The notes beneath the pieces were generated by a model. It made no database searches, was not told where the DNA came from, and saw only the letters and a program-made list of their open reading frames with translations. Positions 14,991 to 23,079 of a DNA stretch of 24,167 bases are shown in pieces; position 1 is the stretch's first letter, and the number at the start of each line of letters is the position of its first letter. This stretch comes from Ginkgo biloba. Its lineage: Eukaryota; Plantae; Ginkgophyta. The position numbers and the translations under genes are program-made. The DNA is taken from NCBI GenBank assembly GCA_024626585.2, contig JANKJI020000002.1, positions 255,481,452 through 255,505,618 of the forward strand. Reading direction: 5' to 3'.

Positions 14991-15555
14991 TGGAATTATT
15001 CTAATTTAAGTTATTAGTTGAGATAGCTTTAGTTAGAATGACATGCANNNNNNNNNNNNNNNNNNNNNNNNNNNNNNGAGGATGACATGCAAGACAAAGT
15101 GCATGTAAGCATAGATTTAGGATAGATATTTATTCACCATTGGATTCTATTCTATGAATTTTTAATGTAGGACATTAGCCATATTTTGAAGTTTGTAAGT
15201 TGATAATGTAACTATGAAATCCATCTTATGATATTGAATATTTTTTCATGGTATCAGAGCCATCTTGGTGAGATTATACATTTTTTATTTTTTGACATAG
15301 CCATCTTTCAAAGGCAATAAATCATAACTCATAGCTAGATTTTAGGAAAGTGAGATATCGCTTTGAAGATATAAAGGAGGTCCAAAATTATTAGAAAGGG
15401 TTTCCATAGGAATGCCTATATAATTCCTTTTGTAATGAACAAAAACCATCATTTAAGGGTTAAGAATATATTTCAAAGTTCGAGTACTAGTCTTTTGGTT
15501 CCAAAATATTATAGGAGGAAAATATGGAATTTCTTAGCAATTTTTGATGGCTCTA
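14988..15555 (+). mobile_element. 5' LTR (about 260 bp, ending CA at 15247-15248), PBS and leader of an LTR retrotransposon
   Basis: ...tttttttCA followed immediately by TGGTATCAGAGCCA. The left boundary is inferred where LINE homology stops (tattggaatt, possibly a decayed TGTTGG). Confidence 0.65.
15249..15262 (+). promoter_or_regulatory. Primer-binding site complementary to the 3' end of initiator tRNA-Met
   Basis: tggtatcagagcca, the canonical plant LTR retrotransposon PBS, directly after CA. Confidence 0.85.
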
Positions 15556-18985: not shown

Positions 18986-19425
18986 GAAACAGGCTTATTA
19001 TCCACCCAAGTGAAGGCATCAGATTATCAAGCATCGGGGAATTAGACTTCTTGACCACCAAAGTAAAGGCACCCCACATAACCCCTACAGACCCAAAAAT
19101 TCATTCAATAGAGTTTCAAAACCTTTTGAGTTTTGTACTTGGACATATTATAAAATAAAGGTGAACAAAGACTTTAGAGATCGGGGATTTTGAAGTGAAT
19201 GTGCCAACACCTTTTTCCAAACATCTGATTTAATGGACCCAATGATTTACTCAATGCGCTTTTAGAAATATTTGAGTTTTGTAAGTTGAAGACTTCACAA
19301 AATAAATGTGATTAAGAATTCGAAGNNNNNNNNNNNNNNNNNNNNNNNNNNNNNNNNNNNNNNNNNNNNNNNNNNNNNNNNNNNNNNNNNNNNNNNNNNN
19401 NNNNNNNNNNNNNNNNNNNNNNNNN

Positions 19426-19665
19426 TACAACCTTCTTGTATAAATGCATCATTTATGGAATGAAGAAGTGGAAGATGGTGGTGCAAGTTTGCACATCATC
19501 CCCTCCTCCTAATTTTGAGTGGTGTATGCATTGGATTGTGTTATCTTTATGGAGGAGTAATCTTTTGTATAGATGCATACATTCAATTTTTGGTTTAGTT
19601 TATGTTGTGTTCATTCATGCTCTTGGGATTATTTTTTGTCTGTTGTGCACTTTGATATTTCTACA
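19426..19665 (+). mobile_element. 3' part of a 5' LTR (TATA-like box, T/G-rich U5, terminal CA)
   Basis: TATAAAT at 19439-19445; ends ...ttctaCA (19664-19665), then a 3-nt spacer and the PBS. The LTR start is hidden in the N gap. Confidence 0.65.
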
Positions 19666-19668
19666 AAT

Positions 19669-19682
19669 TGGTATCAGATCCA
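19669..19682 (+). promoter_or_regulatory. Primer-binding site (initiator tRNA-Met), 13/14 match
   Basis: tggtatcagatcca versus canonical tggtatcagagcca, located 3 nt after CA. Confidence 0.75.
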
Positions 19683-19962
19683 TATTAGAGTATTTGGTAG
19701 ATTTGATCTGTGTTATAAGCTTATGAATTTTATAAAATTTTCTCTATGTGTATGACTAAGTAAGAAGAAGTTGTAGAAATTATTTTGAAGCTATGAGGTT
19801 AACTTATTATAGAGAGTTATGTAGTAGTTCACTAAATTCTTAATAACTATGTAAGAATTCTTTGTTATAACTTCTTCATTGGGAGAAGAGGTAAATGGAT
19901 TTTACAACCACTAATATCCATTATTTTTTTCAATTTTATTTTATTTAGTAGCTACCTTAAAT

Positions 19963-20173
19963 ATGGCTAACACAGAGGATATTAAACCTCTTATTTATGA
20001 TAATGGAATTAGAATGGTTAAGGTTGGGTTTGCAAGAGATGATGCTCCAATGATAGTTTTTCCAGAAATGGTGGGTTGAGCATGTCATACTAGAGTTATG
20101 GTGGGACTAGGATAGAAGGATTCTTATGTAGTAGATGAGGCTCAATCAAAGAGAGTATATTATATAACCTATT
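19963..20173 (+). pseudogene. ACT: Processed (intronless) actin pseudogene fragment, residues 1-64 with traces to about 73
   Basis: Translates [62 protein letters not shown], ungapped against plant actin [64 protein letters not shown]. Two in-frame stops (codons 39 and 51); no intron after codon 20. Confidence 0.95.
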
Positions 20174-20760
20174 AGAGAACCCATTAGTAAAATGATTCAT
20201 TTATGTCTTTCTCTACCTCATCAGCTTGAGGATGAGCTAGAAGGTTGAGAGTTAGAGCTTGAAAGGCAATGCTTGAACCATGAATTTATGGTTCAAAGAG
20301 AACTTGCATGAGAATATCATAAATAAATGATCAAAAGGGAGTTAGAATAAGAGTATCATGAAGAAATGGTCAAACAAGATCTTGTTTATGAAGAAAGATT
20401 AACTCATAAAAGTTATTTTTAATTGTCACCCCCTACCCCATAAGGTTTTACAACTCAAGTCTAATGATGTGGGGATAAAGAGGAAAATAACATCAAATTA
20501 TTTTTTAGGGTTGCCTACTTTTTTCAAAAGGATTATTCCCAAGTCTTCAAGGACGAGTGGGCCACCAAAGTGGTGTTCTATCTATAAGGTTGATTTAAAT
20601 ACTAAGAAAGTTATTGAGAAGCATCATATTATAAGGAAAAAAAATAAGTTGATATTAGAACAATTGAAGGAGTGTTCAGGATCTATGAGAAATGGGGATG
20701 CATTATAGCGAAAGAAAGAAACTAATCTAGAAGAGAGCCCATTAAATCAATAAAATGAAG
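20174..20760 (+). pseudogene. Degenerate ORF: Glu-rich coiled-coil repeat followed by weakly gag-like segment
   Basis: HQLEDELEG*ELELERQCLNHEFMVQRELA*EYHK*MIKRELE*EYHEEMVKQDLVYEERL...CGDKEENNIKLFFRVAYFFQKDYSQVFKDEWATKVVFYL*G. Most stops are TGA/TAA, explicable as single-base decay of sense codons (e.g. CGA, CAA). Confidence 0.45.
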
Positions 20761-21709
20761 TGAATGGAGTTCATCACAAGTCCTCCCCCTTAAAAAATAT
20801 TTTCCCTCAAAGCTTTGNNNNNNNNNNNNNNNNNNNNNNNNNNNNNNNNNNNNNNNNNNNNNNNNNNNNNNNNNNNNNNNNNNNNNNNNNNNNNNNNNNN
20901 NNNNNNNNNNNNNNNNNCTTTCTCATTCTCATATTTTTTAATGTGTGCGCCTAATGTCACATCAATAATATAGTATAATAGGCTTCAAGGTAATTTAAAT
21001 GAGTAAAATACACCATAGGATAATTCAAACCACAAACATTTACACAAAAATATCATGATGTTAGAAATAATTAATCATTAATTAGAACTAGAATCAATCA
21101 ATATTTATAGTAATGTTGAATATTGTTGGATGAGGAATTTAACCCATGCTGACACTAACATGAGAGAATTCATTGTTGGGCACTAGTGAGGAATTGGATG
21201 ATAAAGGATTGGCTCTTTAATGACACTAATAGAGGGTAGCTCCACACTATCATGAGTCATGCCCCTGACAAAGGCCTATACCAACATGAGTTAGTTCATT
21301 AATGAAGTTTGAGGTCAGACCCTGCAATAACTTCACTGACATAGGGGAAATATAATATGGAGGTGACCAATAGATAGATGATGCTTCTCATCAATGTCAA
21401 CATGGGGTTCCTACATAAGTATCTAACTTATATGTACATTGTAACTACCATGATAGTTACTTAATCATCTACTCAATGTATATATAATTGACATATGATA
21501 GATAGAGTAGTAGATTCCTATTGTGATGATATATGTAAGACTTGTATTATGTGATCATTAATATAAATACTTGGATGGTTTTTCACATATCTATGTACAA
21601 TGTCTTATTCTTGTATATGTGATATCAATATGATGTGGAAGTAATTATTATGATATATAACTAGAGTAGGGATACACTGTGTACCTGTTATAAAATACTA
21701 TGCTTAAAA

Positions 21710-23079
21710 TTTGGTGCCATTGCATAAGAACAAACTTGAGTCAATGATAGAAAAGAATGATCAGATATTGAATGAACACCAACATGGAAAAGCAATGAAA
21801 TCTGATAGCAAAGTGGATCATCAACAGGAAGGATAAAAAAATGAAATTGATAGAGGACATTGATGTCTTCATTAAAAAAAATGATAGACTTGGAGAAATT
21901 GACCTTGATTGAAGAAGATTCACTATATGATGAGATATCAACTTGGTGGTTCAACAAGATTGATAGCTACATTGAGTTTTATGATCAATGACATAACATT
22001 CCATTGAAAGAGGTGAAAGATAAGTTCTTCACTAACACTCATAAAGAATTCATTATCAACACTCGAATTGAAATATGTGCGTATACATGTGGAGTGGTGA
22101 TAAGTGAAGAAATGAACCAAAAATTATAAGGNNNNNNNNNNNNNNNNNNNNNNNNNNNNNNNNNNNNNNNNNNNNNNNNNNNNNNNNNNNNNNNNNNNNN
22201 NNNNNNNNNNNNNNNNNNNNNNNNNNNNNNNAGGTTTCTAAAGAAGAGGAAAGAGAAAGAGTAAGAGAAAGAGAAAGAGAAAAATAAAAACATGAAGACT
22301 CCACCACCAAGCAAGGGAGAAGAGGAAGAAAAAGAAAAATAAGAATCATTGAAGAGAAGATCGAAGAAGAAGAAAGAAGAAGGCAATAGTAAGGAGAAGT
22401 GACATATAAAAACCAATAGAGAAGATAAGATAGAGGGAAGTAAGGAATAATAGAAAAAATAGATAGAAGGTAGTGGGAAATAATAGGTAGGTAATACCTA
22501 GAAGCCTCTAGAGATAATTGACATCAACAAGGAAGGCAGTCCATCAAAGACACAAGAAGAAAAAGTTTACCAATAATAAGAGGAGGGACTAGGAGAACAA
22601 CAACAACAACAACAACATGACCTATAGAAATAATAACAATAGCTGACATAATAATAATAGAAACAAAAAATAAAGGATTAAGGTGCAACTTTGAAATAGA
22701 TAAATAAGGGAACCACTATTGGAGATAACATAGAGGGTCAAAAAATAAATTAGATTGATGTAGAAGACATTGTAGGAAGAACCATTGAGAAAGAAGAATA
22801 ACCCTTAGATACTGACCCGTTTTGACATCCTTCATCATTCGCTCAAGTATATGGGAGGAAAAAATAAAAGTACGCTATCCCACCAAAGGAACAAGTATAA
22901 CAAGAAGGTACCACCCAAACTGAGGAGCACTAGTCGACCGATAATAGTGTTGAGAGTGAAAAACATATAGACATAGGAAGCATGTTATCATTCGATAAGG
23001 AATCAATAAAGTTTTAGAAACATTGACCAATGGGGTGGGACATCTTCTAGTTTTGAAAAATTAATAGGTCTCTAGTGGT
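21710..23079 (+). other. Degenerate unknown ORF with Lys/Glu low-complexity and poly-Gln region, probably a TE accessory gene fragment
   Basis: MIDLEKLTLIEEDSLYDEISTWWFNKIDSYIEFYDQ*HNIPLKEVKDKFFTNTHKEFIINTRIEICAYTCGVVISEEMNQKL, followed by (GAGAAA)n and (AAC)7; strongly purine-rich plus strand. Confidence 0.4.
22596..22616 (+). repeat. (AAC)7 microsatellite
   Basis: aacaacaacaacaacaacaac seen directly. Confidence 0.9.

Follow-up and report, generated by a model that had tools for sequence, protein, structure and literature searches.

Long terminal repeat (LTR) retrotransposons of plants carry off pieces of host genes, and aberrant template switching between co-packaged RNAs is the accepted route by which they do so; the non-autonomous maize LTR retroelement Bs1 holds fragments of three host genes (PMC13317346). 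LTR-captured genes number 672 in rice and 1,343 in sorghum, respectively (PMC3726574), and for gymnosperms a 2026 comparative study, which has W. mirabilis among the species analysed, gives a mean of ~400,000 coding fragments captured by transposable elements (TEs) per genome, with at least two fragments in a mean of 13.7% of the host TEs (PMC13477047). Here we describe a candidate for such a capture in a 24,167-nt stretch of Ginkgo biloba DNA (hereafter the window), where one gap-free piece, 19426–20817 on the plus strand, carries in 5′ to 3′ order a putative LTR end, a primer-binding site (PBS) for initiator tRNA-Met (iMet), a leader, actin codons 1 to ~63, a short junction and at least 185 codons of a zinc-finger gene. 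On balance, the reading we favour is that a non-autonomous, Bs1-like LTR element, now old and dead, is represented here by its 5′ part and had captured the 5′ parts of two host mRNAs by template switching, all of its parts having presumably moved as one element.

Two other systems share part of this layout. Template switching by long interspersed nuclear elements (LINEs) yields intron-less chimeric retrogenes that join, in one orientation, the 5′ part of a first RNA to a second RNA that was copied as far as its 5′ end; such chimeras end in a poly(A), carry target-site duplications and lack both PBS and LTR, whereas this locus has a PBS at a distance of 276 nt upstream, with its 3′ end out of view. 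The Gardner-Rasheed feline sarcoma virus carries a gag-actin-fgr fusion and is likewise a retroelement in which a second host gene comes after an N-terminal actin fragment, in sense orientation and through recombination during reverse transcription, but it is an animal retrovirus with a functional fusion that includes gag, whereas the locus lies in a plant, has no gag and has lost its function. The likeness to Bs1 would consist in an LTR element, several mRNA-derived host fragments in tandem and a present or former hybrid reading frame; unlike Bs1, which has both LTRs and has been shown to be transcribed and translated, the locus shows only a 5′ end, without any gag-like sequence, in a dead copy whose donors are actin and a zf-met protein. 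It also resembles the cases of the gymnosperm survey, where host coding fragments, many of them pseudogenised, lie inside LTR retrotransposons, although that work is a computational catalogue whose accessible part does not describe the actin and zinc-finger pairing or its junctions (PMC13477047).

The window is a very AT-rich plant scaffold (28.9% GC without Ns, CpG observed/expected ratio 0.15) built from contigs of ~1.2 kb that are joined mostly by 100-N gaps, and the feature under study is confined to a single such contig of 1392 nt (~1.39 kb) with N gaps on both sides, at 19326–19425 and 20818–20917. In GC content the window is level with the 29.07% published for Welwitschia. Its first segment, 19426–19665, is cut on the left by the gap, is T/G-rich, contains TATAAAT at ~19444–19450 and ends in CA at 19664–19665. 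Shortly after this CA, at 19669, begins TGGTATCAGATC, and the contig thus shows what is expected of an LTR retroelement, a tRNA-complementary PBS (19669–19686, where 15 of 18 positions pair with the initiator tRNA-Met 3′ end) a few bases past a terminal CA. An 18-mer complementary to that tRNA end found two matches in the window with three mismatches allowed where 100 shuffles gave an expectation of 0.00, and a 12-mer of the PBS with at most one mismatch found two against 0.05 expected. A tRNA pseudogene or the head of a short interspersed nuclear element was considered in place of a PBS and rejected, as ARAGORN found no tRNA on either strand and Rfam no match even at E 10.

We take 19426–19665 to be the 3′ end (U5 side) of a 5′ LTR because it lies directly upstream of the PBS; the contig begins at the gap, and neither a seed-12 repeat search nor sensitive blastn found a second copy of this segment in the window. 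The original prediction had placed here a TATA-containing LTR end, an iMet PBS and a leader. The CA, the PBS and a leader of 276 nt, all on the plus strand, are found in the gap-free piece where it had put them, and so is the TATAAAT, whereas the term LTR is a label for a segment that repeat searches find only once in the window. A stop-free stretch of 99 codons (19427–19723, plus strand), the second longest of the window, crosses both the putative LTR end and the PBS; it has no Pfam match and probably results from the T/G-rich, A-poor base composition. A second LTR-end/PBS module occurs at 15235–15266 on the plus strand, where TTTTTTCA is followed directly by TGGTATCAGAGCCATCTT, the latter a second PBS at 15249 that fits the iMet tRNA 3′ end at 16 of 18 positions. 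It has the same orientation and lies 4.4 kb upstream in another contig, with flanks that are unrelated to 19426–19962 except for the PBS.

The leader proper, from the PBS to the actin ATG (19687–19962, plus strand), is 25% GC, shows no coding signal and may include some of the actin 5′ untranslated region (UTR). The 5′ UTR of plant actin genes contains a leader intron that ends a short way before the ATG. Within 19888–19962 (plus strand) the leader has a splice-like AG/GTAAAT near 19889–19896 and, 14 nt short of the ATG, a pyrimidine tract that closes with TTTAG at ~19948; going by these signals, part of the leader might be actin-derived, although chance produces them easily in DNA this rich in A and T.

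The ATG at 19963 begins a plant actin N-terminus, as had been proposed, and opens a dead, intron-less fragment of codons 1 to ~63 (19963–20152, plus strand) that we recognised by translation, Pfam and a match in the PDB. Specifically, the first 38 amino acids (19963–20076) pass the membership threshold of the Pfam family Actin (PF00022, E 9e-7, 28.2 bits at a curated cut-off of 27), in a match that spans profile positions 2–35 only, and their best match among solved structures is the plant pollen F-actin 6iug (E 2.3e-7, 22 of 32 residues identical). Two stops interrupt the actin frame (TGA at 20077 and TAG at 20113), in agreement with the original prediction, and a third, TAG, follows at 20173. 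Reading past both early stops leads to KDSYVVDEAQSKR at 20116–20154, which matches the invariant actin motif of residues ~50–62. Past codon 63 actin is not demonstrable: the frame-1 piece 20168–20245, which covers the right-hand part of the junction together with the opening zinc-finger codons, matches neither actin nor any PDB entry, and an extent of codons 1–73 was rejected for lack of a PDB match to that piece. The remaining actin (codons 64–377) is nowhere in the window, in which the fragment at 19963 is the only actin piece by Pfam among stop-free pieces.

Within this fragment the translation ...RMVK VGFA... is unbroken across codons 20 and 21 (~20022/20023), where intron 1 of plant actin genes lies. 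Four coding exons and three introns make up plant actin genes, in a structure described as “largely universal” (PMC3469877). Because the fragment shows no interruption at the conserved codon 20/21 site, its derivation from an mRNA is supported.

Actin is separated from the next fragment by a junction of 39 nt (20153–20191, plus strand), which holds the third TAG and a tandem repeat, namely the 12-nt unit TATTAGAGAACC repeated 2.5 times at 20158–20187, right where actin and zinc-finger sequence meet. The junction could represent actin codons 64 to ~73 in decayed form, or else a short 5′ UTR that belonged to the zinc-finger mRNA, and the repeat could reflect slippage or microhomology at a switch point, or later decay. 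There is no A-run, poly(A) or A-rich tail at the junction or anywhere else inside 19426–20817, and actin (frame 0) and the zinc-finger fragment (frames 1 and 2) do not lie in a single frame as now read.

The identity of the sequence after actin comes from the longest open stretch of the contig (20403–20705, 101 codons). It has no Pfam match and no usable ESM Atlas match, and an exhaustive HMMER search of 1.84 billion representatives returned nine matches, the best at E 1.3e-25 (Cryptomeria LOC131050455). The top eight carry repeated fingers of the pattern PGWCSLCEVDCNTEKxLxKHILGKKHQ; six of these reach the Pfam models zf-met and zf-C2H2_jaz, with up to 9–11 copies of the finger, and two reach only a weak C2H2 model, while the ninth has neither the finger pattern nor those Pfam models. 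Annotated host genes among the matches are LOC131050455 and LOC131050485 of Cryptomeria japonica and KI387_027885 and KI387_027888 of Taxus chinensis; a further search also returned PITA_34422 of Pinus taeda and a “U1-type domain-containing protein” of Picea sitchensis (UniProt A9P1T2). The best protein relatives are thus all from gymnosperms. By this homology, the region after actin corresponds to the N-terminal part, at least 185 codons, of a host zinc-finger gene and not to gag.

The larger part of this region, 20445–20817 (plus strand), is equivalent to exon 2 of a gymnosperm zf-met repeat-protein gene and consists of a linker, one decayed finger at 20565–20672 and a further linker that runs to the start of the next finger at the N gap. 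The finger aligns by BLASTP to homologue P0003 with 53% identity over 36 amino acids (E 7e-12), but its second Cys is Tyr and its last His is Asn; with two of the four zinc ligands lost, the finger is dead. The C-x2-C...H-x5-H finger is thus broken and the piece does not match Pfam zf-met, although its homology to the family is clear. In the same part, tblastn aligns P0013 (E 2e-9) and residues 153–219 of P0014 (E 1.8e-8, reaching upstream to 20457), and residues 165–256 of P0005 align down to 20813, at the contig end, where the next finger would start.

The smaller part, 20192–20444 (plus strand), is the probable equivalent of exon 1, a coiled-coil N-terminus with its own ATG that has moderate support. 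The frame-1 translation from the ATG at 20192 aligns Met to Met with the coiled-coil N-termini of Cryptomeria and Taxus proteins (P0001, P0002, P0004 and P0005), collinearly and with correct spacing; it contains several stops and shifts from frame 1 to frame 2 near 20402. By tblastn, residues 11–51 of P0004 match this part at E 0.015, and a profile of the four N-termini has its sole match in six frames of the window here. A diverged tandem duplication of 39 nt (13 codons) lies in the coiled-coil part (20288–20326 and 20327–20365, in the region 20288–20404; 27 of 39 positions identical) and is not present in the Cryptomeria and Taxus relatives. Two N-terminal types occur in the gymnosperm zf-met family (P0001/P0002/P0004/P0005 vs P0013–P0016/P0019), a coiled coil in Cryptomeria and Taxus (MGS..LPLLNE..RKYHEQ) and an unrelated sequence of ~150 amino acids in Pinaceae (MDY..GGARAPL). 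The Pinaceae type (MDY...) has no match in the window, whereas the Cupressales-type coiled coil matches, weakly, and the window copy pairs a coiled-coil-type N-terminus with a finger nearer to the Pinaceae type (KHH spacing).

We located introns through the relatives, using the isoforms of Cryptomeria, a Picea contig and the span of the Taxus gene. Two Cryptomeria isoforms differ solely by “ILQ” inserted after ...AISQNE, at the point between exons 1 and 2, and a difference exactly there is the signature of an alternative splice site and of an intron after the N-terminal exon. On a Picea-like genomic contig (L001) the Picea protein gives two exon matches with ~220–260 nt between them; a ...ctcattcag acceptor precedes the second exon, whose start lies just ahead of FSKNSD. 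In Taxus the gene is 1044 nt long and its coding sequence 789 nt. Between “EERL” and “VLQ” there are 14 codons in the window copy vs 13 in Taxus, which leaves no room for an intron. The zinc-finger fragment is therefore uninterrupted where its relatives in Cryptomeria, Picea and Taxus carry an intron, as expected of an mRNA-derived copy. The L001 gene (L001:5654–7152) lies in the JGI metagenome contig Ga0643154_049850, Picea-like nuclear DNA, as a two-exon U1-type zinc-finger gene whose exon 2 is 99% identical to Picea sitchensis A9P1T2, and the opposite strand around it holds remnants of retrotransposons (RVT_1, DUF4283, Retrotran_gag_2).

For retroelement proteins we scanned 404 stop-free pieces of the whole window with Pfam (at least 24 codons from 17121 onward, at least 27 upstream). 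No piece of the contig or of the window matches gag, protease, reverse transcriptase (RT), RNase H or integrase, and there is no Retrotrans_gag, UBN2 or zf-CCHC signal anywhere in the window. Actin is the only solid match over the 404 pieces, accompanied by three marginal ones at E ~1e-3, which is chance level at that number of tests, and over all stop-free pieces of the contig it is the only match of any kind. An autonomous Ty1/copia or Ty3/gypsy element would have gag and pol after the leader; here the leader is followed by actin and then by a host zinc-finger protein instead.

The whole unit, 19426–20817, is old and decayed because CpG is nearly absent from the contig: it has two CpG in 1392 nt (observed/expected 0.06), and none in the LTR-end, leader and actin parts. 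GC in the actin part is down to 37%. Most of its amino-acid changes, as well as both early stops, appear to fit C-to-T or G-to-A transitions from conserved actin codons, judging from the 6iug alignment and the established sequence of actin. About one third of the normally invariant actin residues are altered, which indicates that the insertion is old, at a rough estimate by tens of millions of years. Equal depletion of CpG across the sub-segments is compatible with one old insertion. The copy has since decayed through deamination of methylated cytosines: little CpG remains, stops and frameshifts are numerous and the finger has lost zinc ligands. The unit encodes nothing today, and nothing in it is functional.

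If an LTR element captured both fragments, the host mRNAs would have been co-packaged with the element RNA in a virus-like particle. During minus-strand synthesis the reverse transcriptase would leave the element RNA for the zinc-finger mRNA and copy this to about its 5′ end, then switch into the actin mRNA at ~codon 63 and copy up to the actin 5′ end, and by a last switch return to the element leader beside the PBS. Such an order of switching would explain why both captured pieces are 5′-terminal, sense-oriented parts of mRNAs. For the upstream junction, read-through or splicing is an equally possible route. Capture of host mRNA by an LTR element was also what the original prediction proposed, and it stands as the most likely origin of an intron-less, sense-oriented actin fragment 276 nt past a PBS; the gag that was to follow does not.

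Capture predicts a sense-oriented gene fragment that starts less than 300 nt from the PBS, and this is what the contig shows. The same fragments could nevertheless come from a chimeric processed pseudogene made by LINE-type target-primed reverse transcription, in which synthesis ran along the zinc-finger mRNA from the poly(A) up to the 5′ end and then along the actin mRNA from ~codon 63 to the 5′ end of that mRNA, the product having landed in the leader of an unrelated old LTR element; two nested retrocopies would be a variant of this. Both fragments are without introns, as such an origin demands, and their arrangement is that of a classic template-switch chimeric retrogene. LTR elements fill more than half of a Welwitschia-like genome (PMC8275611), so that retrocopies often land inside them; PBS sites are also frequent, with two in the window. 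However, by our rough estimate only ~1% of random retrocopy insertions would start in sense within 276 nt of a PBS, and a poly(A) or A-rich tail is absent inside the contig, the 3′ end lying beyond the gap at 20818. A nested insertion into a full-length actin pseudogene is further opposed by the absence from the window of actin codons 64–377. This roughly 1-in-100 position, together with the lack of gag or pol nearby, leads us to favour capture by an LTR element, and we regard the LINE-type origin as a possibility that we doubt but take seriously. Several observations weigh against capture. No second LTR, polypurine tract or target-site duplication is seen in a piece bounded by N gaps on both sides; the order of a 5′ fragment of one gene followed by a nearly full-length second one is exactly the layout of a LINE-type template-switch chimera; the N-terminal coiled-coil match is only moderately significant, with 21 of 2000 composition-preserving shuffles scoring as high (p ~0.01); uniform loss of CpG is expected of any old methylated DNA and is no proof of a single event; and the exhaustive protein search, in a library that apparently lacks the source genome, returned no near-identical sister copy of the zinc-finger part. 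A word-index protein search with the leader-plus-actin ORF and an exact look-up of eight ORFs of the window also returned nothing, a result without weight in collections from which the source genome seems to be missing.

The remaining accounts fare worse. Pack-type elements typically carry pieces of unrelated genes side by side in one orientation (PMC13317346), and capture at the DNA level by an element of Pack-MULE, CACTA or Helitron type would give such an arrangement, but the introns that it would retain are missing from both fragments and neither terminal inverted repeats nor Helitron ends are seen. An assembly chimera of unrelated short-read contigs is suggested by the low quality of an assembly made of ~1.2-kb contigs joined by 100-N gaps, yet the junctions fall in unique, decayed sequence inside a single gap-free contig, where there is no long repeat to mislead an assembler; we hold DNA-level capture and misassembly, taken together, to be quite improbable. 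The original prediction had gone further and proposed that the actin ATG was adopted as the start of gag, in an LTR family with an actin-Gag fusion as its first open reading frame (ORF). The actin ATG does follow a PBS and a leader. What comes after actin, however, shows homology to a host zinc-finger protein, beginning at the start codon of the latter, the frames differ, stops are numerous and the domains of gag and pol are missing from the window as described above, which likewise tells against the actin-tagged Gag expected of such a fusion. We rate this proposal as extremely improbable, and for the present copy it is contradicted and essentially excluded.

A broader reading makes the locus a single decayed member of a non-autonomous LTR family that was formerly active and multi-copy in a GC-poor gymnosperm, with a hybrid ORF of actin (1–63) and a double-stranded-RNA-binding zinc finger, comparable to that of Bs1. 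We consider this unlikely; if true, it would mean that actin-matching sequence was spread genome-wide, where it could feed actin-directed small RNAs or a new chimeric protein. Should many copies with identical junctions exist, they would form a marker family for dating captures and for testing small RNAs against an essential actin gene.

The locus is an ordinary example of the capture of host gene fragments by retroelements and brings no new principle. It matters little alone, and its interest is that of a tidy case in which the 5′ ends of unrelated host mRNAs seem to have been stitched behind a retrotransposon leader, with two junctions inside one 1.4-kb stretch, in a type of genome for which hundreds of thousands of captures are reported. 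In practice it serves as a correction, in that no actin-Gag fusion is encoded here and the part after actin is a fragment of a host zinc-finger gene.

Outside the contig, the region 22232–22520 is of low complexity and strongly purine-rich on the plus strand (AT skew 0.44 for 22001–23000), and it has weak, K/E-rich matches to the linkers of zinc-finger proteins (E 0.1–1). We considered it as a continuation of the zinc-finger gene and rejected this, judging the matches to be an effect of composition.

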